From assembly GCF_902713615.1 (NCBI RefSeq), contig NC_052158.1:7987196-8051195 (forward strand): a DNA stretch of 64,000 nt, read 5' to 3'. Position 1 is the first letter of the stretch. Each line of letters opens with the position of its first letter. The notes beneath the pieces are model-generated. The model saw nothing but the letters and a program-made list of their open reading frames with translations. It made no database searches and was not told the origin of the DNA. Positions 25,378-64,000 of the stretch are shown piece by piece. A program made the translations under genes and the position numbers. The stretch is from Scyliorhinus canicula. Lineage: Eukaryota.

Positions 25378-26580
25378 CCCTCAACCCCCTCCCCCCCCAG
25401 CACTGACCCCCCCCCCCCCACACCCCTGAACACCCCCCCCCCCCCGAACACCCCCCAACCCCCCCATCACCCCCCACACCCTGAACCCTCCCAACACTGA
25501 ACACCCACCAACCCCCCCCCGAACACCCCCCACACCCTGAACCCCCCCCCAACACTGAACACCCACCAACCCCTGAGCCCCCCCAACACTGAACACCCAC
25601 CAACCCCCCCCCCCGAACACCCCCCACACCCTGAACCCTCCCAACATTGAACACCCCCCACACCCTGAACACCCCCAACCCCCCACACCCTGAACCCCCC
25701 CAACACTGAACACCCCCCACACCCTGAACCCCCCCAACCCCCCCACAGCCTGAACCCCCCAGCCCCCCATACCCTGAACCCCCCACACCCTGAACCCCCC
25801 AACCCCTCACACCCTGAACCCCCCAACACTGAACCCCCCCTGAACCCCCATCACACCCACACCCTGAACCCCCCAACCCCACACACCCTGAACCCCCCCA
25901 ACCCCTCACACCCTGAACCCCCCCAACACTGAACACCCACCAACCCCCCCGTGAACACTCCCCACACCCTGAACCCCCCCAAATCCCCCCACACCCAGAA
26001 CCCCCCAACACTGAACACCCACCAGCCCCCCAAACCCCCCCCCCCAAGCCCCCCGAACACCCCCACACCCTGAACCCTCCCAACCCCCCACACCCTGAAC
26101 CCCCCCCAACCCCCCCACACCCTGAACGCCCCCAACACTGAACACCACCAGCCCCCCTGAACACCCCCAACCCCCCTGAACACCCCCAGACCCTGAACCC
26201 CCCCAACCCCCCACACCTTGAAACCCCCCCAACACTGAACACCTACCAACTCCCCCCGCGAACACTCCCCACACCCTGATCCCCCCAAACCTCCCCCACC
26301 CTGAACCCCCCCAAACCCCCACACCCTGAACCCCCCCACCCTGAGCACCCCCCAAACCTCCCCCACCCTGAACCCCCCAACCCCCACACCCTGAACCCCC
26401 CCACCCTGAGCACCCCCCAAACTCCCACACCCTGAACCCCCCACCCTGAGCACCCCCCAAACCCCCCCACCCTGAACCCCCCAAACACTCCCCCCACCCC
26501 CACCCTGAACCCCCCCAAACGCCGCACCCCCACCTGAACACCCTCCCCCCGACCCCCCGGACAGCCTCCACCCCCCGAAA
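25378..26580. repeat. C-rich minisatellite (CCCCCACACCCTGAA / CCCCCAACACTGAAC units)
   Basis: Tandem degenerate units with almost no G on the + strand. Confidence 0.9.
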
Positions 26581-28035
26581 CTCTCTCTCACCTTCCCCCA
26601 AACCTCTCGCCCCGAACCTCTGCCTCTCCCCCCCGAACCTCTCCCTCACCTCCCCCCGAACCTCTCCCCCGTACCTCTCCCTCAACCCCCCCGAACCTCT
26701 CCCTCAACCCCCCCCCGAACCTCTCCCTCACCCGCCCCAAACCTCTCCCCTGAACCTCTCTTCCACCCCCTTGAACCTCTCCCACCCCACCGAACCTCCC
26801 CCCCGAACCTCTCTTGCCTGCCCCCGAACCTCTATTGCCCCCCGAACCTCTCTCGGTCCCCCAACCTTTCTCTCACCTCCCCCGAACCTCTACCCCCTGA
26901 ACCTCTCCCCCCTGAACCTCTCTCCCTCAACCCCCCCCCGAACCTCTCCCTCAACCGCCCCGGACCTCTCCCCTGAACCTCTCTTCCACTCCCCTGAACC
27001 TCTCCCACCCCCACCGAACCTCCCCCCCCCAAACCTCTCTTGCCTGCCCCCGAACCTCTCTTGCCCCCCGAACCTCTCTCGCTCCCCCAACCTTTCTCTC
27101 ACCCCCCCCCGAACCTCTACCTCCTGAACCTCTCCCCCCCGAACCTCTCTTGCCTGCCCCCGAACCTCTCTTGCCCCCCGAACCTCTCTCGCTCCCCCAA
27201 CGTTTCTCTCACCTCCCCCGAACCTCTCCCCCCCGAACCTCTCCCCCCTGAACCTCTCTCCCCTCAACCCCCCCAAACCTCTCCCTCACCCGCCCCGGAC
27301 CTCTCCCCTGAACCTCTCTTCCACTCCCCTGAACCTCTCTTCCACCCCCCTGAACCTCTCCCACCCCCACCGAACCTCCCCCCCCGAACCTCTCTTGCCT
27401 GCCCCCGAACCTCTCTTGCCCCCCGAACCTCTCTCGCTCCCCCAACCTTTCTCTCACCTCCCCCGAACCTCTACCCCCCTGAACCTCTCCCCCTGAACCT
27501 CTCTCCCCTCCCCTGAACCTCTCCATCCTCCCCCGAACCTCTCTCCCCTCCCCCGAACCTCTCCCCCCCCCGAACCTCTCTCCCCCTGAACCTCCCGCTC
27601 CCCTCCCTCCTCTCCCCGAACCTCTCTCCCCCTGGCCCCTCCTTGAACCTCTGTCCCCCCCCTCCCGAACCTCTGTCCCCCCTCCCCCCGAACCTCTCTC
27701 CCCCCCCGAACCTCTCTCCCCCCCGACCCTCTCTCGCCTCCTGAACCTGTCTCCTCCTCCCGAACCTCTCTCCCTCCCCCCCCGAACCTCTCTAACCCCC
27801 CCCCCGAACCTCTCTCCACCCCGAACCTCTCCATTCCCCCCGAATCTCTCTCCCCCTCCACCCAAACCTCTCTCCCTCCTGAACCTCTCCACTCCCCCTC
27901 CTGAATCTCTCCATTCCACCCCGCGAACCTCTCCACTCTCCCCTGAACCTCTCCACTCTCCCCTGAACGTCTCCACTCTCCCCTGAACCTCTCCACTCCC
28001 CCCCCGAACCTCTCCACTCCTCCCCCCCCTTCCCC
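26580..28035. repeat. C-rich minisatellite (CCCCGAACCTCTC / CCCCGAACCTCTCCACT units)
   Basis: Tandem units. Confidence 0.9.
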
Positions 28036-31215: not shown

Positions 31216-32885
31216 GTAGAACCTCTCCCCCCCCGAACCTCTCCACTCCCCCCCGAACCTCTCCACTCCCCCCCGAACCTCTCCACTCCCCCCCGAACCT
31301 CTCCACTCCCCCCGAACCTCTCCACTCCCCCCCGAACCTCTCCACTCCCCCCCCAAACCTGTCCACTCCCCTGAACCTCTCCACTCCCCACTGAACCTCT
31401 CCACTCCCCCCTGAACCTTTCCACTCCCCCCCCTGAACCTCTCCACCCTCCCGAACCTCTCCAACCCCCGCCGATCCTCTCCACTCCCCCCCCCGAGCCT
31501 CTCCACTTCCCCCCGAACCTCTCCAACCCCCCGAACCTCTCCACCCCCTGATCCTCTCCACTTCTCCCCCCTGGACCTCTCCACTCCTCCCCCCTGAACC
31601 TCTCCACTCCCCCCCCCCCCGAAACTCACTCCCCCCCCGAACCTCTCGACTCCCCTCCGATCCTCTCCACTCCCCCCCGACCCTGAACCTCGTCACCCCC
31701 CCAAACCTCTCCTCCCCCTCTCCGATCCTTTCCACTCCCCCCCCAAACCTCTCCACTTCCCCCCCCGAACCTCTCCACCCCCCCGAGTCTCTCCACTTCT
31801 CCCCCCCTGAACCTCTCCACCCTCCCCGAAACTCATCACTCCCCCCGAACCTGTCCACTCCCCCCCGAACCTCTCCACTCCCCCCCGAACCTCTCCACTC
31901 CCTCCCCCTGAACCTCTCCACTCCCCCCGAACCTGTCCACTCCCCCCGAACCTCTCCACTCCCCCCCGAACCTCTCCACTCCCTCCGCCCTGAACCTCTC
32001 CACTCCCCCCTCGAACCTCTCCACTCCCCCCTGAACCTCTCCACTCTCCCCCCGAACCTCTCCACTCCCCCCCCCCGAACCTCTCCCTCCCCCCGAACCT
32101 CTCCACTCCCCCCCGAACCTCTCCACTCCCCCGAACCTCTCCACTTCTCCCCCCCGAACCTCTCCACTTCCCCCCCCCGAACCTCTCCACCTCCCCGAAT
32201 CTCTCCACTTCTCCCCCCCTGAACCTCTCCACTCCCCCCCTGAACCTCTCCCCCGAACCTCTCCACTCCTCCCCGAACCACTCCACTCCCCCCCGAACCT
32301 CTCCACTCCCCCCCGAAACTGTCCACTCGCCCCCCCGAACCTCTCACCCGAACCTCTCCACTCCTCCCCGAACACTCCACTCCCCCCCCGAACCTCTCCA
32401 CTCCTCCCCGAACCTCTCCACTCCCCCGAACCTCTACCCCCGAACCTCTCCACTCCTCCCCGAACCTCTCCACTCCCCCCCCGAACCTCTCCACTGCACC
32501 CCCGAACCGCTCCACTCCCCCCGAACCTCTCCCCTCCCCTCAAACCTCTCCACTCCCCCCTGAACCTCTCCACTCCCCCCCTGAACCTCTCCACTCCCCC
32601 CTCAAACCTCTCCACTCCCCCCTGAACCTCTCCACTCTCCCCCCGAACCCCTCCACTCCCCCCCGAACCTCTCCACTCCCCCCCAAACCTCTCCACTCCC
32701 CCCCCCCGAACCTCTCCACTGCAACCCCGAACCTCTCCACTCCCCCTGAACCTCTCCACTCCCCCCTCGAACCTCTCCACTCCCCCCCCGAACCTCTCCA
32801 CTCCCCCCCCGAACCTCTCCACTCCCTCCCCCTGAACCTCTCCACTCCCCCCGAACCTGTCCACTCCCCCCCGAACCTCTCCATG
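31216..32885. repeat. C-rich minisatellite (CCCCCGAACCTCTCCACT, about 17-20 bp)
   Basis: Same unit as that immediately left of the Gypsy fragment. Confidence 0.9.
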
Positions 32886-36190: not shown

Positions 36191-36574
36191 TATGAATTCA
36201 TGGCTGAGTCCAGAAACCACGAATAGATTCAGCCCTTTAGGAAATTTTCATATATTTGCAAAGGGGAGTGCTAGCTTTTTTTCTTTGAGTATTGCGTGCT
36301 TGTCAGAAGTTTATCTTTCTTTGACGTGGTTTTTCAATGTCTATTTGTTTATTCGGACAAGATTAGGAGATGTTCAAAGGATTGAAGCTTTTACAATGGG
36401 ATTATTAATAGCTGTTTTATAATCTTAACAGAGGAGCAAGTTTTTAAGTAGATTTTGAATGGCTGATTGTATTTACTTAATCTCCTTAGTATTTCAAAGT
36501 CTTTCCAGTGTCATCATGTGGTTTATAAATTCTATACATAGTGGATATTGGGGAAGTGAGCATGAAGGAGTGGT

Positions 36575-37995
36575 TGGGAGATATGATGGGATATGGAGTG
36601 GGTATAGGGTGTATGGAAGATGCATGAGGGAATGGAGGGATGGTTGGGAGATATGATGCGATATGGAGTGGGTATAGGGTGTATGGAGGATGCATGAGGG
36701 AATGGAGGGATGGTTGGGAGATATGATGGGATATGGAGTGGGTATAGGGTCTATGGAGGATGCATGAGGGAATGGAGGGATAGTTGGGAGATATGATGGG
36801 ATATGGAGTGGGTATAGGGTCTATGGAAGCTGCATGAGGGAATGGAGGGATGGTTGGGAGATATGATGGAATATGGAATGGGTATAGGGTCTATGGAGGA
36901 TGCATGAGGGAATGGAGGGATGGTTGGGAGATATGGGATATGGAGTGGGCATAGGGCCTATGGAAGCTGCATGAGGGAATGGAGGGATGTTTGGGAGATA
37001 TAATGGGATATGGAGTGGGTATAGGGTGTATGGAGGATGCATGAGGGAATGGAGGGATGGTTGGGAGATATGATGGGATATGGAGTGGGTATAGGGTGTA
37101 TGGAAGCTGCAGGAGGGAATGGAGGGATGGTTGGGAGATATGATGGGATAAGGAGTGGGTATAGGGTGTATGGAAGCTGTAGGAGGGAATGGAGGGATGG
37201 TTGGGAGATATGATGGGATATGGAGTGGGTATAGGGTGTATGGAAGCTGCATGAGGGAATGGAGGGATGGTTGGGAGATATGATGGGATATGGAGTGGGT
37301 ATAGGTTGTATGGAAGCTGCATGAGGGAATGGAGGAATGGTTGGGAGATATGATGGGATATGGAGTGGGTATAGGGTGTATGGAAGCTGCATGAGGGAAT
37401 GGAGGGATGGTTGGGAGATATGATGGGATATGGAGTGGGTATAGGTTGTATGGAAGCTGCATGAGGGAATGGAGGAATGGTTGGGAGATATGATGGGATA
37501 TGGAGTGGGTATAGGGTGTATGGAGGATGCATGAGGGAATGAGGGATGGTTGGGCGATATGATGGGATATGGAGTGGGTATAGGGTCTATGGAGGATGCA
37601 TGAGGGAATGGAGGGATGGTTGGGAGATATGATGGGATATGGAGTGGGTATAGGGTCTATGGAAGCTGAATGAGGGAATGGAGGGATGGTTGGGAGATAT
37701 GATGGGATATGGAGTGGGTTATAGGGTCTATGGAGGATGCATGAGGGAATGGAGGGATGGTTGGGAGATATGATGGGATATGTAGTGGGTATAGGGTGTA
37801 TGGAAGCTGCATGAGGGAATGGAGGGATGGTTGGGAGATATGATGGGATATGGAGTGGGTATAGGGTCTATGGAAGCTGCATGAGGGAATGAGGGATGGT
37901 TGGGAGATATGATGGGATATGGAGTGGGTATAGGGTGTATGGAAGCTGCATGAGGGAATGGAGGGATGGTTGGGAGATATGATGGGATATGGTGT
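36575..37995. repeat. 70-bp G/A-rich minisatellite, about 20 copies
   Basis: TGGGAGATATGATGGGATATGGAGTGGGTATAGGGTGTATGGAAGCTGCATGAGGGAATGGAGGGATGGT unit. Confidence 0.95.
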
Positions 37996-38004
37996 GGTTC
38001 TAGG

Positions 38005-38600
38005 GGGTGCGATTCTCAGAGTCTCCGTGCCGAAATCGTGCTCGGCGTGTGAGGGGAGAATGGTCAGCAAACCTGAGATCTGGTCCGACTGCCACGCGCG
38101 CGGTCTACGCGGCGCCGGTCGGGGGCCAGTGAAAGAGGCCCCCGCGGCGATTCTCCGCCGACAACTGGCTGAGTTCCCGATGACGTGGCACTCTCATGGC
38201 CCCACCCAGCAGGAACATCGGCTGGCAGCTGTGGTCACAGTCCACGGCCGCCCTGGTGGGGGGCGGGGAATCCTTCGCCAGAGGGGACGTCTAGGATGGC
38301 CAGGGTTCCGATCGGGGGCCAGGGATCCGCGGGCGCGCGCGATCTGGGGGGGGGGGGCGCTATGTTGTCGGTGACGGTCCGCAGTGTGGGTCGGCCATGT
38401 CGCGCGGCGCAGTGTGTACCTCCGATGGAAGTGCAGTGCCCCGTATCGGCAGCCGGAGCTGCGAGGAGCACTCCGGGGCCCTGCTAGCTCCCTGCAAATC
38501 GGAGCATCACCCTGGACTTTCTACAGGTAAGTCCAGAGTGATTCGCGTCAGTTTATTCGTGGGCGTGGGGGCATAGCCCTATTATTGGAGAAACCCGCCC
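38005..38600. mobile_element. Harbinger-type MITE
   Basis: GGGTGCGATTCTC...GAGAAACCCGCCC with 3-bp TSD AGG. Confidence 0.8.
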
Positions 38601-39880
38601 AGGGTGTATGGAGGATGCATGGAGGAATGGAGGGGGCATTGGAGATGTGGCAGGCATGGAGGATGGATTGGTGATGGAGGGGGCATTAGTGATATGGCAG
38701 GCATGGAGGATGGATTGGGGATGGAGGGGCATTGGTGATATGGCAGGCATGGAGGAGGGATTGGGGATGGAGGGGCATTGGTGATATGGCAGGCATGGAG
38801 GATGGATTGAGGATGGAGGGGTAATAGTGATATGGCAGGCATGCAGGATGCATTGGTGATATGGCAGGCATGGATTGGGGTTGGAGGGGCATTGGTGATA
38901 TGGCAGGCATGGAGGATGGATTGGGGATGGCGGGGTAATAGTGATATGGCAGGCATGCAGGATGCATTGGTGATATGGCAGGCATGGATTGGGGTTGGAG
39001 GGGCATTGGTGATATGGCAGGCATGGAGGATGGATTGGGGATGGCGGGGTAATAGTGATAGGGCAGGTATGGAGGATGGATTGGGGATGGAGTGCTATTG
39101 GTGATATGGCAGGCATGGAGGATGGATTGGGGATGGAGGGGTAATAGTGATATGGCAGGCATGGAGGATGGATTGGTGATGGAGGGGCATCAGTGATATG
39201 GCTGACATGGAGGATGGATTGGGGATGGAGGGGTAATAGTGATAGGGCAGGCATGGAGGATGGATTGGTGATGGAGGGGCATTGGTGATATGGCAGGCAT
39301 GGAGGATGGATTGAGGATGGAGGGGTAATAGTGATATAGCAGGCATGGAGGATGGATTGGGGATGGAGGGGGTATTAGTGATATGGCAGACATGGATAAT
39401 GGATTGGTGATGGAGGGGTAATAGTGATATTGCAGGCATGGAGGATGGATTGGGGATGGAGGGGTAATAGTGATATGGCAGACATGGATAATGGATTGGG
39501 GATGGAGGGGTAATAGTGATATTGCAGGCATGGAGGATGGATTGGGGATGGAGGGGTAATAGTGATATGGCAGACATGGATAATGGATTGGGGATGGAGG
39601 GGTAATAGTGATATGGCAGACATGGATAATGGATTGGGGATGGAGAGGGCATTGGTGATATGGCAGGCATGGAGGATGGATTGGGGATGGAGGGGTAATA
39701 GTGATATTGCGGGCATGGAGGATGGATTGGGGATGGAGGGGTAATAGTGATATGGCAGGCATGGAGGATGGATTGGGGATGGAGGGGTAATAGTGATATG
39801 GCAGGCATGGAGGATGGATTGGGGATGGAGGGGTAATAGTGATAGGGCAGGCATGGAGGATGCATTGGTGATGGAGAGTC
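38601..39880. repeat. About 46-bp G/A-rich minisatellite
   Basis: GATATGGCAGGCATGGAGGATGGATTGGGGATGGAGGGGTAATAGT unit. Confidence 0.93.
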
Positions 39881-40504
39881 CATGAGAGATATGAGACTTA
39901 AAACAGTTAAAAGCTTACCTGAACTCAGCCGTTGATATTGTAAAAAGCCCCCTCCCCTGCTCCGTTGCAGTGTTTTTGTTCCTACCTCGCTGCACCGAGT
40001 GTTTGTTGATGCAGCCAGGATTAGAAAACCCGTCTGGAAGGACAGAAAGAACTGAGCAGACAGTGATCTCCGTGGTGATGTACGACATCACCACTGATTA
40101 GAAAGTCTGGCGCATTACATTGTGAATGTGTCTCTAATTCACTTGTCTCTCAGTCCGGAAGAAACGGTCTCGAACACGTTTGTACTTTCGAATATTCTTT
40201 ATTGCGATCGAGGCCGCTCTCTAGGTATTCCAAAGAAGTAACTCTGAGAGGGCCAAAGTCTTGCTCAAAACATCCTGTCTTTATATGTTTTTTAAGGGGC
40301 TGTCCCTTACATTCACTTGAGCTTGCCCCCATTACAAAGCATAGCTTGTTTTTGCCATAGTTTCGAGACATGATTTTACAGACTTTAAAGTTATCTATTG
40401 GCACATGAGTATATAGAAATTTTAGGAAAAACAGCAGGTGTTTAGCCACAGTATCAATGGCTCCCACATTTCGTATTCTGTCATCCAGCCATCTTCCTTG
40501 TTTC

Positions 40505-40853
40505 ATAGAACATAGAACATAGAACAGTACAGCACAGAACAGGCCCCTCGGCCCTCGATGTTGTGCCGAGCAATGATCACCTTACTCAAACCCACGCATC
40601 CACCCTATACCCGTAACCCAACAACCCCCCTTAACCTTACTTTTTAGGACACTACGGGCAATTTAGCACGGCCAATCCACCTAACCCGCACATCTTTGGA
40701 CTGTGGGAGGAAACCGGAGCACCCGGAGGAAACCCACGCACACACGGGGAGGACGTGCAGACTCGACACAGACAGTGACCCAGCCGGGAATCGAACCTGG
40801 GACCCTGGAGCTGTGAAGCATTTATGCTAACCACCATGCTACCGTGCTGCCCT
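40505..40853 (-). mobile_element. tRNA-derived SINE (HE1-like, CR1 tail)
   Basis: Complete copy with a (CATAGAA)n tail on the + strand. Confidence 0.92.
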
Positions 40854-41090
40854 AGGCTATTTTCTCAAGGCTATTTGGCTTACAGTCATGAGTCGGCTCA
40901 CAAATTCAATAATAACGCCCTTATTTGTAACTTGCCACTAATGTGTCCCATTACTTCTGGATTGTTCTAGCTATTAACCCTTGCTTCACATTCTCAACAT
41001 TACTATATTTAGTTTCAGTCATTCTGCCTCTTCAAGAATTATATCTCGAAATTCTTTTTTCAGTTGAAATGCTTCAATCAGTTCTTTCCA

Positions 41091-41151
41091 ATGATGAAAA
41101 GAAGATGCTTCAGTCTTGTGTTCCTACTTGTGTTTCATTATGTTCTGTCAG
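41091..41151 (+). CDS. Signal-peptide exon of butyrophilin-like gene (exon 41064-41151)
   Basis: MMKRRCFSLVFLLVFHYVLS+G; acceptor TTCTTTTTTCAG and donor CAG|GTAAGC; phase 1 matches the IgV exon (gives E-R-F-R-V). Confidence 0.75.
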
Positions 41152-46234: not shown

Positions 46235-47790
46235 ATGGCCGGATTTTGGATTTTGTATGGGCGGGGACGGTGCCAAGAGTTAGGAGGACCCTGCTACAGA
46301 GGCAGCAGGGAGGGTTGGCATTGTCGAATCTGCTTCATTATTATTGAGCGGTGAATGCAGAGAAGGTGGGGCGATGGTGGGAAGGTGAAGGGGTAGAATG
46401 GGTTAGGATGGAGGAGGAATCCTGTAAGGGGTCCAGCTTAAGGGCTATGGTGACGGTAGTGTTGCCAATGACACCGAGCAGGTACTCAGGAAGCCTGGTG
46501 GTGCAGTCCACGGTGCAGACCTGGAACCAGTTGAGGATCATTTTAGGATGGAAGGGATGTCGGTGTGAACACCATTATGTGAGAATCACGGGTTTGAGCC
46601 GGGGTGGGAATGGATGGCATGTATAGGAGGTGGAGAGAAGTGGGGCTTGTCAAGGTGAGGGATTTATATCTGGAGGCAGGATTTGCCTGTCTGGAAGAAT
46701 TGAGGGAGAGGGTAGAGCTCCCAAGAGGAAGTAAGTTTAGGTACCTGCAGGTGTGGTTTGGAAAGGGTTCCCTAGGTTGCCGAGGTACACCCTGCGGGAG
46801 TGACTGCTGCTTCCGGATGTGGATGGGGATGGCATCATCAGAGACATATACAGGTGGCTGGGAGAACAGGGTGAGCGGGTGGAGATTAAGGAGAATTGGG
46901 AAGGGGAGCTGGGAGGGGAGATAAACTGGGGAGTATGGAGTGAGGCACTGTGAAGGATAAATGCGCCCTCGTGAGCAAGGATGATCCTGATACAGTTCAA
47001 GGTGTTACACAGAGTCATAGATTGTCCATGCAGCCCAGTTTCTATCACTAAGCTAGTCCCACTTGCCTGCATTTGGCCCATATCCCTCTATACCCACCCT
47101 GCCCATGTAACAATCTAACTCTTTTTTAAAGGACAATATTGTACCTGCCACTAACGCTGCCTCTGGCAGCCCGTTCCAGACGCTCACCACCCTCTGTGTC
47201 ATATGTACCCTCAGTGTACATATGACGTGGATAAGAATGAGTGGCTTCTTTCAGGGCGTGGCAGATGATTGTGAAAGGCGTGGGCGGTTATCAGCGAATC
47301 ACATGCACATATGTTCTGGGGCTGTGAAACGTTGAAGAGGTTTTGGGCGGGGGTATTTGCGGTGCTAATGAGGATAGTGGGGAGGAGGTTAGGCCGGACC
47401 CTTTGGTGGCAATATTTGGGATTTCGGAGAAGCCGGAGCTGATGGAGGGGAGGAAGACCGATATTGGGGCCTTCGCCTCTCTGATTGCCCAGCTACGAAT
47501 CTTATTGGAGTGGCGGTCAGCAACGCCACCGGGGGTAGCGGCCTGGCTGGGTGACCAGTATGGTTCCCTTCAGCTGGAAAAGATAAAATACGAGTTAAGG
47601 GGATTAATGGAGGGGTTTGAGGCAAGATGGGGGATGTTTGTGACCATGTTTGAGGAGTTGTTTGTCGTGGAGGAGAGGTGAAAAAGGAGAAACATTTGTA
47701 CAAACTGCATAATCGTTGGTTGGGAACCTTGTTTTGCGAATTGTTTATGTTTTGTAACTTTTTATATTTTGTAATAAAATACATATTAAA
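46235..47790 (+). mobile_element. L1-like ORF2 C-terminal region and 3' end (duplicated at about 49326-51300)
   Basis: GGLALSNLLHYY*AVN, DLY...FAC.EELRE...FRYLQV, RILLEW..ATPP...EKIKY motifs; AATAAA and A tail; nested CR1 tail at about 47010-47200. Confidence 0.8.
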
Positions 47791-48667
47791 AAAATTGAGA
47801 AAGAAAGACAAAGAATCTTTGACATTCTCCCCAATTCCTCACTTACAGTACCACTCAACCCTGAGGTTACTGGTCAGAACGCATTTATTAACTGACGTAT
47901 TCATGGAAACTACACAGTAAATGTGTGAACAATACAAGAGGGAATAGTTACATTTTCCTCAATGTTCTGTGCTTTTGATGCCATTGTTCTTAATTTATTT
48001 TCCTGATTCTTGCGGTGAAAGCTGGGGCGAAGGCCAGAGAATGTTAAAGTCTTTCTTAATTTTAATGGTTACGGCATGATTGGGTAGGAAAGGAGGTGTC
48101 AAGACGCCGACACCAACGGTCACTTTTCTCCATTATATTGTTTGGGACATCGTGTAAAAAACTTAAAGGAGTGGATCCCGCGATGTCACTTAGTATTTTT
48201 GATGATCTGGGCACCATTTTTAAAGGCTGCCCCAGCACAGAAATGTTAACCAGGAACCCCCCCCCCCCCCCCCTCCCCACCATACACACACACCCTCCCC
48301 ATCCCAACCGGAATGGACTTTCTTACGGGGTTTCGGGGAGGAGGATGATTCAGGTGTAGAGGTCTGATAATTAGATGCAGATATATGGAATTATGCTCCC
48401 GATGTTAAACGTCAGGAATCCCATTACGTCACTGACAGGGGGTGAGGACAATCGCATCCCGCCTTTACGTTGGTGTGAAATGTGATTTGACCGTCTTGTG
48501 TGATTTTCTGATCCCTTTTCTGATCCTGCCCAAAGAAAAAGAGAGCTGAACATCTCAGAAGTTATAGCACCAATAATCAAATGTTAGTTTTTCCTTTAAA
48601 TATCTCCCAAAGATTAAATCTATTCGCACATTATTTATGTTGATGTTTGAAATGTTCTATTTTCCAG

Positions 48668-49015
48668 AGAGATTCCGTGTTCTTGTGCCTGATGATCCCA
48701 TCGTAGTCACTGTGGGTGATGATATTGTATTAGAGTGCCAACTGGTACCAGATATATCTCTGGATAACCTGGAGATTCGATGGTTTACATCAGACTCAGC
48801 TTCACCAGTACATTTATACAGCAATGGACAGGACCGACCTGACGTGCAGGACAAAGCTTATCGAGGGAGAACAGAACTTTTTAAAGATGAGTTTCCCCGT
48901 GGAAATGCCTCTCTCAAACTGAAGAAGATAAAAGCATCAGATGGAGGGAGTTACACCTGTTTCATTGGCTCTAAAACATACCACGATGAAGCAGTGATAC
49001 ATCTGTAAGTTGGAG
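48668..49015 (+). pseudogene. Butyrophilin-type IgV exon, copy A, with premature stop
   Basis: ERFRVLVPDDPIVVTVGDDIVLECQL...IRWF...YRGRTELFKDEFPRGNASLKLKKIKASDGGSYTCFI...HL*; CAA>TAA at 49006-49008. Confidence 0.85.
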
Positions 49016-50729
49016 GTTTGTTCATCTTGTAGACGACTAAAGTTTGAATAATGTGAGGCATAAATTTCAGCCTTTCTAGGCTCTGGGGTATAAAAGCTCA
49101 GGAGGCCCGAGAAGGTAAATTAAACAACACGTAATTAGTTGACATAAAGTAAAGGTCGGCTTACAGCTCACAGATCCCCATCGGGATTACCGGAAGTGCT
49201 GGTCCCGATTTGGGCCGGCTTTGGTGGGAGAGCTCGAATTCTAGACCCCACGGGGAGATCGATCAGTGTGACCCTGTGGGTCTCATGAGGGTTATTTTAT
49301 ATCCCCCCCCCCCCACACACACACACAATGGGTTAGGATGGAGGAGGAATCCTGTAAGGGGTCCAGCTTAAGGGCTATGGTGACGGCAGTGTTGCCAATG
49401 ACACCGAGCAGGTACTCAGGAAGCCCTGTGGTGCAGTCCACGGTGCAGACCTGGAACCAGTTGAGGAGGCATTTTAGGATGGAAGGGATGTCGGTGTGAA
49501 CACCATTGTGTGAGAATCACGGGTTTGAGCTGGGGTGGGAATGGATGGCATGTATAGGAGGTGGACAGAAGTGGGGCTTGTCAAGGTGAGGGATTTGTAT
49601 CTGGAGGCAGGATTTGCCTGTCTGGAGGAATTGAGGGAGAGGGTAGAGCTCCCAAGAGGAAGTAAGTTTAGGTACCTGCAGGTATGGTTTGCAAAGGGTT
49701 CCCTAGGTTGCCGAGATACACCCTATGGGAGTGACTGCTGCTTCCGGATGTGGAAGGGGAGGGCAGGAGCGGAGACATATACAGGTGGCTGGGAGAACAA
49801 GGAGGTGAGCGGGTGAAGATTAAGGAGAAATGGGAAGGGGAGCTGGGAGGGGAGATAAACTGGGGAGCATGGAGTGAGGTACTGTGAAGGATAAATGCGA
49901 CCTCGTGAGCAAGGATGATCCTGATACAATTCAAGGTGTTACACAGAGTCATAGATTGTCCATGCAGCCCAGTTTCTATCACTAAGCTAGTCCCACTTGC
50001 CTGCATTTGGCCCATATCCCTCTATACCCACCCTGCCCATGTAACAATCTAACTCTTTTTTTTAAAGGACAAAATTGTACCTGCCACTAACGCTGCCTCT
50101 GGCAGCCCGTTCCAGACGCTCACCACCCTCTGTGTCATATGTACCCTCAGTGTACATATGACGTGGATAAGAATGAGTGGGTTCTTTCAGGGCGTGGCAG
50201 ATGATTGTGAAAGGCGTGGGCAGGTATCAGCGAATCACATGCACATATGTTCTGGGGCTGTGAAACGTTGGAGAGGTTCTGGGCGGGAGTATTTGCGGTG
50301 CTAATGAGGATAGTGGGGAGGAGGTTAGGCCGGATCCTTTGGTGGCAATATTTGGGATTTCGGAGAAGCCGGAGCTGATGGAGAGGAGGAAGACCGATAT
50401 TGGGGCCTTCGCCTCTCTGATTGCCCAGCTACGAATCTTATTGGAGTGGCGGTCAGCAACGCCACCGGGGGTAGCGGCCTGGCTGGGTGACCAGTATGTT
50501 TCCCTTCAGCTGGAAAAGATAAAATACGAGTTAAGGGGTTTAATGGAGGGGTTTGAGGCAAGATGGGGGATGTTTGTGACCATGTTTGAGGAGTTGTTTG
50601 TCGTGGGGGTGGGGGGGGGGGGGGGAAGAGGTGAAAAAGGAGAAACATTTGTACAAACTGTATAATCGTTGGTTGGGAAGCTTGTTTTGCGAATTGTTTC
50701 TGTTTTGTAACTTTTTATATTTTGTAATA

Positions 50730-51282
50730 GAACATGGAACATAGAACAGTACAGCACAGAACAGGCCTTTCGGCCCTCGATGTTGTGCCGAGCAATGCTC
50801 ACCCTACTCAAACCCACCCTATACCCATAACCCAACAACACCCCCCCCTTAACCTTACTTTAAGGACACTCCGGGCAATTGATCATGGCCAATCCACCTA
50901 ACCCGCACATCTTTGGACTGTGGGAGGAAACCGGAGCACCCGGAGGAAATCCACGCACACACGGGGAGGACGTGCAGACTCCGCACAGACAGTGACCCAG
51001 CCGGGAACCGAACCTGGGATCCTTGAGCTGTGAAGCCTTTATTTTGTTTTTTATTTTTTTTAAATAAATTTAGATTACCCAATTTTTTTTTCCAATTAAG
51101 GGGCAATTTAGCGTGGCCAATCCACCTACCCTGCACATTTTTGGGTTGTGGGGGCGAAACCCACGCAGACACGGGGAGAATGTGCAAACTCCACACGGAC
51201 AGTGACCCAGAGCCGGGATCGAACCTGGGATCTCAGCGCCGTGAGCTGTGAAGCATTTATGCTAACCACCATGCTACCATGC
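50730..51282 (-). mobile_element. HE1-like SINE containing a nested poly(A) SINE (51037-51241)
   Basis: Absent from unit A; the nested SINE has a 13-bp TSD TGAGCTGTGAAGC. Confidence 0.9.
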
Positions 51283-52164
51283 TAAAATACATTTTTAAAA
51301 ATTGAGAAAGAAAGACAAAGAATCTGTGACCCTCTCCCCAATTCTTCAATTACAGTACCACTCAACCCTGAGGTTACTGGTCAGAACGCATTTATTACCT
51401 GGCGTATTCATGGAAACTACACAGTAAATGTGTAAACAATACAAGAGGGAATAGTTACATTTTCCTTAATGTTCTGTGCTTTTGATGCCATTGTTCTTAA
51501 TTTATTTTCCTGATTCTTGCGGCAAAAGCTGGGGAGAAGGCCAGAGAACGTTAAAGTCTTTCTTAATTTTAATGGTTACGGCATGATTGGGTAGGAAAGG
51601 AGATGTCAAGATGCCGACACCAACGGTCACTTTTCTCCATTATATTGTTTGGGACATCCTGTAAAAAACTTAAAGGAGTGGATCCCGCGATGTCACTTAG
51701 TATTTTTGATGATCTGGGCACCATTTTTAAAGGCTGCCCCAGCCCAGAAATGTTAACCAGGAACCCCCGCCCCCCCCACCACACACACACCTTCCCCATC
51801 CCAACGGGAATGGACTTTCTTACAGGGTTTCGGGGAGAAGGATGATTCAGGTGTAGAGGTCTGATAATTAGATGCAGACATATGGAATTATGTTCCCGAT
51901 GTTGAACGTCAGGAATCCCATTACGTCACTGACAGGGGGTGAGGACAATCGCATCCCGCCTTTACGTTGGTGTGAAATGTGATTTGACCGTCTTGTGCGC
52001 TTTTCTGCTCCCTTTTCTGATCCCGCCCAAAGACAAAGAGAGCTGAACATCTCGGAAGTTATAGCACCAAAAATCAAATGTTAGTTTTTCCTTTAAATAT
52101 CGCCCAAAGATTAAATCTTTTCCCACATTATTTATGTTGATGTTTGAAATGTTCTATTTTCCAG

Positions 52165-52512
52165 AGAGATTCCGTGTTCTTGTGCCTGATGATCCCATCG
52201 TAGTCACTGTGGGTGATGATATTGTATTAGAGTGCCAACTGGTACCAGATATATCTCTGGATAACCTGGAGATTCGATGGTTTACATCAGACTCAGCTTC
52301 ACCAGTACATTTATACAGCAATGGACAGGACCGACCTGACGTGCAGGACAAAGCTTATCGAGGGAGAACAGAACTTTTTAAAGATGAGTTTCCCCGTGGA
52401 AATGCCTCTCTCAAACTGAAGAAGATAAAAGCATCAGATGAAGGGAGTTACACCTGTTTCATTGGCTCTAAAACATACCACGATGAAGCAGTGATACATC
52501 TGCAAGTTGGAG
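52165..52512 (+). CDS. Butyrophilin-type IgV exon, copy B (intact)
   Basis: Acceptor TTTTCCAG, donor GAG|GTTTGT, phase 1/1; Cys-Trp-Cys V-set core with D-E-G-S-Y-T-C; YRGRTELF and GNASL are typical of BTN/MOG/B7. Confidence 0.9.
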
Positions 52513-52584: not shown

Positions 52585-52798
52585 GTATAAAAGCTCAGGA
52601 GGCCCGAGAAGGTAAATTAAACAACACTTAATTAGTTGACATAAAGTAAAGGTCGGCTTACAGCTCACAGATCCCCATCGGGATTACCGGAAGTGCTGGT
52701 CCCGATTTGGGCTGGCTTTAGTGGGAGAGTTCGAATTTTAGACCCCACGGGGAGATCGATCAATGTGACCCTGTGGGTCTCGTGAGGGTTATTTTATC

Positions 52799-57888: not shown

Positions 57889-58389
57889 CATAATCTTTCA
57901 GAGTTCAGACAACACACACGTTAACACTTCTGAGTTCAGAGTGCAGAGCAGCAATGATCCCAAGTCCAAAAAGCACGCGCAAAGCAGTTACCTCCCGATG
58001 ACACTCGAGTAGTTCAATTCATTCAACACAGTAAGTTAAACCTTCTGAGCTCAGACAACACAAGACCCTTCAAATATGTGACCCCATAATTGTTATAATG
58101 TCACTGTTTGTCCTTGTGCAGGGAAACTGTTATCAGACAAGTTGGCGCATATTCAGAAGGATAACATCATTGGGTGAACTGAATATTGGAGTATCCACTC
58201 ATGACTCTGTTCACATAATTTAGTTGCACATTTCAGTTTCACAGAGGAGTCAAAATCTATGGGCATTTCTAAGGCATCTTTCTCTAGATGATGCAAAATC
58301 TCAGTGGAAAGTGCAAAGTTGTTTTGTGTGTCCATAACTTACTGGTGTAAGTTGGATAGGTGATATCAGAAATCCCAGTATTTCCACTT

Positions 58390-58512
58390 ACATAGAACAT
58401 AGAACAGTACAGCACAGAACAGGCCCTTCAGCCCACGATGTTGTGCCGACCATTTATCCTCATCCAAGATCAACCTAACCTCTACCCCTTCAATTTACTG
58501 CTGTCCATGTCT
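58390..58512 (-). mobile_element. CR1 3' tail fragment
   Basis: CATAGAACATAGAACAGTACAGCACAGAACAGGCCC. Confidence 0.75.
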
Positions 58513-58960: not shown

Positions 58961-59245
58961 GTTTTGGACACCGGCCTTGGATGCAGCTGGAGGAAAACAA
59001 CAAAGACGGACTTCGTATTGTGTGTAAATCAGATGGATGGTATCCTGATCCAGTGATACGGTGGGAGGATGGGAATGGACAGGATGTAACAGCACAGTCT
59101 GAATGGGAATTCCTAAAGGACTCCAGAGGCCTTATTACTGTCCAGAGTCATATTGATGTCACAAGTGATTCTGTAAACAGGTTTTCATGTTTCATGGAAA
59201 ACCGGTTATTGAGGAAAAGACGAGAGGCCCATGTCCAGATATCAG
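58961..59245 (+). CDS. Butyrophilin-type IgC exon
   Basis: GFGHRPWMQLEENNKDGLRIVCKSDGWYPDPVIRWEDGNG...GLITVQSHIDV...FSCFMENRLL...VQIS; acceptor TTGCAG, donor CAG|GTAGGT, phase 1/1. Confidence 0.9.
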
Positions 59246-61499: not shown

Positions 61500-62405
61500 A
61501 TTGCAATGTCAGTGGGGCTCCACATTGCTGGGGGTGGGGGGTTGGTCTGTCCCCACTGGGGCACCACACTGCTGGGGGGGTGGGGGTGGGTCTGCCCCCA
61601 CTGGGGCACCACACTGCTGGGGGGTGGGTCTGCCCCCACTGGGGCACCACACTGCTGGGGGGGTGGGGGTGGGTCTGCCCCCATTGGGGCACCACACTGC
61701 TGGGGGTGGGGGGTTGGTCTGCCTCCACTGGGGCACCACACTGCTGGGGGTGGGGGGTGGGTCTGCCCCCACTGGGGCACCACACTGCTGGGGGTGGGGG
61801 GTGGGTCTGCCCCCATTGGGGCACCACACTGCTGGGGGTGGAGGGTGGGTCTTCCCCCACTGGGGCACCACACTGCTGGGGGTGGGGGGGTTGGTCTGCC
61901 CCCACTGGGGCACCACACTGCTGGGGGTGGAGGGTGGGTCTTCCCTGGGGGTGCCTGCATAGTGAAGGACATGGTGGGGGTGGAGGGTTGGTTTGCCCCC
62001 AGTGGGGCTCCACACTGCTGGGGGGGTGGAGGGTGGGTCTGCCCCCACTGGGGCACCACATTGCTGGGGGTGGATGGTTGGTTTGCCCCCAGTGGGGCAC
62101 CACACTGCTGGGGGTGGGGGGTGGGTCTGCCCCCAGTGGGGTGCCACACTGCTGGGGGTGGGGGGGTGGGTCTGCCCCCACTGGGGCACCACACTGCTGG
62201 GGGTGGGGGGTGGGTCTGCCCCCACTGGGGCTCCACACTGCTGGGGGTGGGAGGGTTGGTCTGCCCCCACTGGGGCTCCACACTGCTGGGGGTGGGGGGG
62301 TGGGTCTGCCCCCACTGGGGCACCACACTGCTGGGGGTGGGGGGTGGGTCTGCCCCCACTGGGGCTCCACATTGCTGGGGGTGGGGGGTTGGTCTGCCCC
62401 CAGTG
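61500..62405. repeat. About 44-bp G-rich minisatellite (CCCCCACTGGGGCACCACACTGCTGGGGGTGGGGGGTGGGTCTG)
   Basis: About 20 tandem units. Confidence 0.93.
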
Positions 62406-62789
62406 GGTGCCTTCTTGGTCCAGAAGGATAGCACTGAGCAGCGGTACTCAGTCAGGGGTGAACATTCAGAGAGCAGCATTCTGACCAAGCCACACCGAGG
62501 GAGAAAGGGGCAGGAAGGCATTCAAAGAGGTTGGGGGAGAAGCGAGAGAGTCCCGTATGGAGTCTCACTGGGTTGAGAACTGTACTCTGGATCAGGAGAG
62601 GCACTGAGCACGGTCTCCCTACTGTTCCCGTCTGGGGCTGGGGGCTGGACTCTGGGGGCTCCAGCTGTCACTAGGGGTGAGTGTGCAGAACGAGCTTTTC
62701 AGCACAACTGGCTCGGTGTACAGCACTCTGAGAGAAGGCGGGACACGTAAGGGTGGGGGAGGCTTGGGGGATTTGAGGGTCCTGGGGTG

Positions 62790-63994: not shown

Positions 63995-64000
63995 ATGAAA
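63995..64000 (+). CDS. Probable start of the next (transmembrane) exon of the BTN-like gene
   Basis: Long polypyrimidine tract ending CTTTTAG, then ATGAAA; phase 1 gives D-E. Cut by the window edge. Confidence 0.45.

Follow-up and report, generated by a model that had tools for sequence, protein, structure and literature searches.

A stop codon in one copy of a tandemly duplicated IgV exon in a catshark butyrophilin gene

Introduction

The question raised by this locus is whether a stop codon in one copy of a duplicated Ig exon is a regulatory device or damage. The window, which is the whole stretch of 64,000 nt of DNA that was analysed, comes from the small-spotted catshark Scyliorhinus canicula and contains the 5' half of one butyrophilin gene. 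Two nearly identical IgV exons, here called A and B, are found in the gene, and one base in exon A produces both an in-frame TAA and the possible splice donor GTAAGT. The initial annotation, made from the sequence alone, read this as a built-in switch between a membrane receptor and a poison or soluble-decoy product. In the analysis presented here the gene was identified, the history of the two exons was reconstructed from their divergence, and the splice paths through and around exon A were worked out. The stop probably reflects recent damage to exon A.

Results

Identity and layout of the gene

The gene belongs to the butyrophilins. A search with the V domain of exon B against 1.84 billion representative proteins returned shark butyrophilin-like proteins. 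The RefSeq protein of the window's own gene is XP_038672913.1 ("butyrophilin subfamily 3 member A1-like", 596 aa, Scyliorhinus canicula), which is placed on the 163.5-Mb chromosome of assembly GCA_902713615.2. Residues 1-352 of this protein are the exact translation of 41091-41151, 48668-49006, 51356-51379, 52165-52512, and 58961-59245. Pfam identifies V-set twice and C2-set_3 in the exons of the window, and PRY and SPRY further on in the protein. According to XP_038672913.1, a hydrophobic segment and then PRY and SPRY follow beyond position 64000, outside the window. The full gene layout is L, IgV, IgV, IgC, TM, B30.2, and the gene is a butyrophilin in the full sense: the signal peptide, IgV, and IgC are each found on their own phase-1 exon, and the TM and B30.2 (PRY/SPRY) parts are supplied by the continuation of the RefSeq protein. 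The closest sequences to the V domain in the PDB are CD276, MOG, BTN1A1, BTN2A1, and BTN3A, with CD276 chains at the top. Only two V exons are present in the window, together with one C exon and one leader (Table 1).

The leader matches residues 1-20 of XP_038672913.1 exactly and is a typical signal peptide. The leader exon starts at 41064, behind the acceptor ttttttcag, with the bases TTGAAATGC. Since it is preceded by an acceptor, at least one 5' UTR exon must lie further upstream. The ATG of the paralogue XP_038672924.1 (M-KCFNQ) corresponds to TTG in the window gene, so translation must begin at the ATG ATG at 41091. The leader exon also has an out-of-frame ATG at 41068.

Table 1. Positions of the gene features and duplication units in the window
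Feature	Position	Strand	Description	Evidence
Leader, coding part	41091-41151	+	Signal peptide; MMKRRCFSLVFLLVFHYVLS plus first base of split Glu codon; donor CAG/GTAAGC	tblastn, sequence reading
Duplication unit 1	46397-49326	+	2930 bp; contains microexon copy and V exon A; begins with AATGGGTT	
Microexon, unit-1 copy	47849-47872	+	24 nt; identical to unit-2 copy, same type of acceptor and donor; unused in XP_038672913.1	
IgV exon A	48668-49015	+	Phase 1-1; V-set; in-frame TAA three codons before native donor	Pfam PF07686, 1.7e-11
Candidate new donor	49005-49010	+	GTAAGT made by T49006; phase 2; TAA at 49006-49008	
Duplication unit 2	49327 to ~52812	+	~3.48 kb; ends in long poly-C, then third AATGGGTT	
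Repeat-element insertion	50735-51280	+	543 bp; unit 2 only; similar to 40498-40825	
Microexon, unit-2 copy	51356-51379	+	24 nt; phase 1-1; acceptor ttacag; donor CTG/GTCAGA; linker LPLNPEVT between V domains in XP_038672913.1	
IgV exon B	52165-52512	+	Phase 1-1; intact; CAA where A has TAA	Pfam PF07686, 7.5e-13
IgC exon	58961-59245	+	Phase 1-1; donor CAG/GTAGGT	Pfam C2-set_3 PF22705, butyrophilin-type Ig-C, 1e-19

Several repeats lie outside the coding parts. Minisatellite arrays are found upstream of the leader exon at 25392-28027, 31228-32883, 36571-38005, and 38608-39876, with units that include C-rich repeats of 18-21 nt, a 70-nt unit present 20.6 times at 94% identity, and a 46-nt unit present 27.5 times. 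These arrays explain the extreme GC-skew blocks of the composition profile. The intron downstream of the IgC exon contains a 44-nt G-rich minisatellite (61513-62407, about 20 copies, 86% matches) in which both strands show long but spurious open frames. A scan of the 40-64 kb part against Rfam gave no match.

Exons A and B differ at two bases

The acceptor of exon A, ttttccag, ends at 48667, and the first two bases of the exon complete a split codon. It encodes 112 V-set residues and then reads CAT CTG TAA GTT GGA G before the GTTTGT of the intron. The codons CAT CTG TAA occupy 49000-49008, with the T at 49006, and the native donor GAG/GTTTGT lies between 49015 and 49016. Exon B has the same acceptor and donor and reads CAT CTG CAA, with C at 52503. 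Only two bases distinguish the exons. At 48944/52441, A has GGA (Gly) and B has GAA (Glu), while at 49006/52503, A has the TAA stop and B has CAA (Gln).

The initial annotation described a duplicated IgV exon in which a single base makes both TAA and GTAAGT, and this is correct to the base; reading of the sequence likewise places the TAA three codons ahead of GAG/GTTTGT. It also stated that translation through A ends soon after a complete V domain, which is nearly but not entirely right. The truncated domain is nearly whole, with 112 of 115 V residues, but the last three (x-V-G) are lost, including the Val that is almost invariant in the final L-x-V motif. The production of a stop and a donor by one base is a trivial outcome of the context CTG-NAA-GTT, and it is no evidence of design.

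Exons A and B lie in a tandem duplication

Both V exons are found inside a head-to-tail 2.9/3.5-kb duplication within one gene. The two units adjoin without a break and are about 96% identical over 2.9 kb. The sequence AATGGGTT is present at all three unit boundaries, and both the junction and the end of unit 2 lie in poly-C/CA tracts, which suggests that the duplication arose where short homology allowed slippage or unequal exchange. Unit 1 starts 5.2 kb downstream of the leader. Since there is a single leader and it is outside the repeat, this is an exon duplication and not a gene duplication; a partial gene duplication comprising leader plus V was rejected on the same grounds.

The duplication is real sequence and not a low-complexity chance match. 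Besides the 543-bp insertion, several small indels distinguish unit 2 from unit 1. The presence of the insertion in unit 2 alone shows that the two units have had separate histories. The 3.8% divergence of the flanks, the insertion, and the indels together indicate that the duplication is neither brand new nor likely to be a collapsed-haplotype copy. The inserted element belongs to one interspersed repeat with copies at 40498-40825, 50720-51042, and 58378-58475, which are 76-92% identical.

Exon A has been conserved since the duplication

The exons have diverged much less than the sequence around them. A and B differ at 2 of 348 sites (0.6%), while the flanks differ at 96 of 2545 aligned sites (3.8%; binomial P=1.7e-4). 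All 348-column segments of the alignment that have at most four differences overlap the exon. The longest stretch free of differences (48627-48943) begins 41 nt upstream of the acceptor and covers the acceptor region, and differences between the units start again 15 nt past the exon donor. The conserved footprint is the exon and its splice signals, as would be expected from purifying selection on a used exon. No synonymous differences were observed, compared to about 3.0 expected from the intron rate (P=0.048), and there were two non-synonymous differences versus 10 expected (P=0.003). Since there is no synonymous change, gene conversion is also possible, and the near-identity of A and B could be due to gene conversion, to purifying selection for a V-V-C product, or to a combination of the two.

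The difference between 0.6% in the exon and 3.8% in the flanks suggests that A was kept intact until recently and that the stop is young relative to the duplication. The initial annotation had raised the possibility that the gene once encoded a V-V-C form. This gains support from the conservation of exon A and its splice signals far above the flanks, and also from the horn shark, in which an annotated V-V-C butyrophilin is in frame and intact.

Relatives do not share the stop

The stop appears to be private to exon copy A. The neighbouring paralogue XP_038672924.1 (butyrophilin-like protein 10, S. canicula) has a V domain that is identical to exon A at 114 of 115 residues, and its IgC is identical to the window IgC over the aligned exon. 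In the S. torazame protein XP_072331741.1 the V domain is identical to exon A at 105 of 115 residues. At the protein level, both have Glu at the position of the stop. These relatives have a single V, unlike the window gene with its two V exons and its stop and Gln at this codon. In other proteins the same codon encodes Lys in most sharks and often Gln in rays, and Asn and other residues are also seen; the stop is not conserved in relatives when proteins are compared. All four bases apparently occur at the first position of the codon, as deduced from the residues (A for Lys, G for Glu, C for Gln, T for the stop). The residue it encodes is hypervariable and lies on the surface, where the last V strand ends.

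The ancestral base at 49006 was probably G. Two histories require two changes each: C>T after the duplication, or G>T in A and G>C in B. The C>T origin given in the initial annotation is therefore possible, but it is one of two equally parsimonious histories since the relatives have G.

Many intact paralogues are present on the same chromosome, and the database models of the butyrophilin family often have tandem V arrays. The paralogue XP_038672924.1 is 368 aa long and lacks B30.2. Its RefSeq model spans 156 kb and has a transposase-like N-terminus, which suggests that the model is mis-joined.

Canonical splicing of exon A leads to premature stops

When A is skipped, the L-V-C frame (L+B+C) is open, as the initial annotation had proposed. 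If A is included through the native donor at 49015, the in-frame TAA stays in the message regardless of whether the donor is joined to the microexon, exon B, or exon C. The new donor at 49004/GTAAGT gives HLTTQP and then a stop when joined to the microexon, and a frameshift and stop when joined to exon C. When it is joined to exon B the result is ...HLEIPCSCA and then a stop, in agreement with the predicted stop after about 8 codons. Every canonical path that includes A terminates prematurely, so the earlier claim that inclusion through either donor ends translation early holds generally, and as in poison exons the premature stop is upstream of later junctions. By the exon-junction rule, stops upstream of later junctions make an RNA a candidate for NMD. 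The stops of the A-including paths have this position, and such RNAs are therefore NMD candidates.

The two donors were compared with a rough position-weight matrix that gives a ranking only. TCT/GTAAGT scores slightly above the native GAG/GTTTGT and so ranks at least as high, which makes a changed splicing pattern plausible. No A-specific polyadenylation signal was found in the intron after A, nor any other regulatory feature specific to A. The sole polyadenylation-like hexamer downstream of A is ATTAAA at 49119, and the same hexamer is found after B at 52616. Since it is common to A and B, a decoy mRNA would have no obvious escape from NMD. A search with the V domain of exon A against a set of 5.8 billion proteins for short L-V(A) products gave three candidates, none of which reached a score. 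No transcript-derived proteins or contigs of this gene were found in the protein and contig collections searched.

The RefSeq model uses a non-canonical junction

XP_038672913.1 reads through both V domains as V-V-C, with the sequence ...AVIHL-LPLNPEVT-ERFRV... at the point where they are linked. This requires exon A to end at 49006, one base into the TAA, and to be joined to 51356. The implied intron (49007-51355) begins with AAGTTG and has a non-canonical AA-AG pair, and TAG would arise if 49006 were joined straight to exon B. A canonical route to HLLPLNPEVTE was sought among donors at about 49000-49016, acceptors at about 51340-51360, an AG internal to the microexon, and microexon lengths that convert phase 2 to phase 1. 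No GT, GC, or AT donor works, and only 49006^51356 gives the sequence. The unit-1 microexon, which the model passes over, has an acceptor tract that is no worse than that of the unit-2 copy and if anything richer in pyrimidines. The linker PLNPEVT is absent from all of about 200 homologous proteins fetched.

From its sequence context the 49006^51356 junction looks like a frame-rescuing artefact of model building, and XP_038672913.1 masks the in-frame stop of exon A. RefSeq has a single model for the gene, in which A is included, and no A-skipping isoform. If RNA-seq underlies XP_038672913.1, then A is at least transcribed and spliced. Studies of shark butyrophilin domain architecture and of gamma-delta T-cell ligands should beware of the non-canonical V-V-C reading in this entry.

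Discussion

The stop in exon A is probably a young loss-of-function lesion in a duplicate exon rather than an evolved switch. The sequence itself establishes how the gene is built, that the segment is duplicated, which two bases differ, where each splice path leads, and how strongly exon and flanks differ in conservation; from this we infer the order of events, the inclusion of A, and NMD as follows. An intronic segment of about 3 kb with its IgV exon would have been copied in head-to-tail orientation, probably when the short AATGGGTT homology gave rise to slippage or unequal exchange. For the greater part of the period that followed, the two V exons and their splice signals would have remained almost identical, until one recent base change at 49006 created TAA at the third-from-last codon of A, with GTAAGT as a by-product. 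Since the acceptor region and native donor of A are base-for-base those of B, exon A is expected to be spliced in still. Transcripts that include A would stop within or just after A, and they would be NMD substrates or would yield at most a leader-plus-V fragment. The receptor would be encoded only by transcripts that skip A, and the allele would yield mostly unproductive RNA. The sequenced individual may carry a null or hypomorphic allele here. A lesion of this kind fits a birth-and-death gene family, given the intact paralogues next door. The long preservation of A shows that the exon mattered and that a fixed stop would be costly; a polymorphism or a base error therefore fits as well as decay does.

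It is improbable that exon A is an evolved cassette whose inclusion by either donor produces an NMD-targeted RNA for dosage control or a secreted single-IgV decoy. When A is included, the premature stop does follow an almost entire V domain, with a good signal peptide in front of it; the splice signals of A are intact, and the exon is conserved. Soluble isoforms are also known among B7-family proteins. However, this conservation lies in coding sequence that B has as well; it is older than the stop and gives no information on it. The poison feature itself is one base, and neither the closest paralogue nor the S. torazame relative has it. The acceptors and native donors of A and B are identical, so nothing visible would allow the two exons to be regulated differently; this favours unregulated inclusion over a switch. 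The ATTAAA after A is equally present after B, so that a decoy mRNA is not obviously protected from NMD, and the decoy itself would lack the conserved Val of the last strand. It is very unlikely that T49006 is fixed and that A has been converted to a regulated cassette which, when included by way of GTAAGT or of the native donor, tunes the receptor through NMD or releases a soluble single-IgV butyrophilin. If it were so, a single base would have turned the duplicated exon of an immune receptor into a poison or decoy exon in a cartilaginous fish. RNA data with regulated use of A would make it a rare case of a poison or decoy exon produced by a single mutation, but nothing found here makes this likely.

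There is also little probability of an artefact, with T49006 wrongly called in the consensus or in polishing (the base being in truth C or G, and the gene a plain V-V-C) or with the tandem produced by assembling two haplotypes side by side. A lone disabling base is suspicious in an exon that otherwise looks selected, and butyrophilin regions can be highly polymorphic. Polishing is error-prone in recently duplicated sequence. On the other hand, the T is unlike B, which has C, and unlike the paralogue, where G is deduced from Glu, and mis-mapped paralogous reads would not give T. The window contains neither gaps nor any N. Long reads easily cover a 3-kb tandem, and the NCBI annotation of the same assembly likewise has both exons. 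A collapsed haplotype in particular is unlikely given the divergence of 3.8% between units that adjoin without a break, the 543-bp insertion, and the indels.

Finally, it is very unlikely that XP_038672913.1 is correct and that a real 596-aa V-linker-V-C-TM-B30.2 protein is made through 49006, the 24-nt microexon, and exon B: the protein matches the window exactly at those segment boundaries, the microexon is open and phase 1-1 with AG/GT borders, exon A has long been conserved, and in-frame V-V-C butyrophilins such as Heterodontus XP_067865535.1 are annotated elsewhere, but the AA-AG intron is cut exactly one base into a stop codon, as in an artefact, the direct join to exon B would give TAG, the same model leaves the identical unit-1 microexon unused between the leader and A, and the linker is in none of about 200 homologues.

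With the stop read as a young lesion, the locus is a snapshot of exon-level birth and death in a butyrophilin gene of a shark: after the V exon had been duplicated, its two copies stayed almost the same while the introns diverged by 3.8%, and a single base then disabled the first copy.

Comparison with known systems

Exon A resembles a poison exon in some respects. Poison exons and alternative splicing coupled to NMD are found, for example, in SR-protein genes. As with them, inclusion of exon A would put a premature stop upstream of further junctions. Classical poison exons are conserved as such, often ultraconserved, and regulated. The stop in the catshark exon, in contrast, is one young base in a copy of a coding exon and is not common to relatives, so the analogy is functional only.

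The tandem Ig-exon duplication of B7-H3 (CD276) is the nearest documented precedent. It gives rise to 2Ig and 4Ig isoforms, and the 4Ig isoform has altered properties (Sun et al. 2011, PMC3172298). The duplication has been linked to whether a soluble form occurs and to a change in its release, and soluble B7-H3 is shed from the 2Ig form (PMC3172298). Both genes belong to the B7/butyrophilin superfamily, and each has a different number of ectodomain domains as a result of Ig exons being duplicated head to tail within the gene. As in the 4Ig type, the catshark duplicate lies between the leader and the downstream exons of one transcription unit. However, both copies are not open and canonically joinable in frame, since only the AA-AG junction is open. 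In B7-H3 a V+C pair was duplicated and both pairs are translated in the 4Ig form, while in the catshark gene only V was duplicated and the first copy has a stop. The soluble form of B7-H3 is shed and does not come from a stop-bearing exon.

A second comparison is provided by the horn shark. XP_067865535.1 of Heterodontus francisci (butyrophilin subfamily 3 member A1-like, 602 aa) is an L-V-V-C-TM-B30.2 model that also has a duplicated V exon. Its V1 and V2 are joined directly in frame and are identical at 100 of 115 residues. Unlike the catshark gene, it has two open V copies and lacks a linker microexon. The identity of its V domains to the catshark V is only about 52-56%, which indicates that it belongs to another paralogue group and that its duplication was independent. 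Overall, V-exon duplication recurs in shark butyrophilins, and it can be read as V-V-C.
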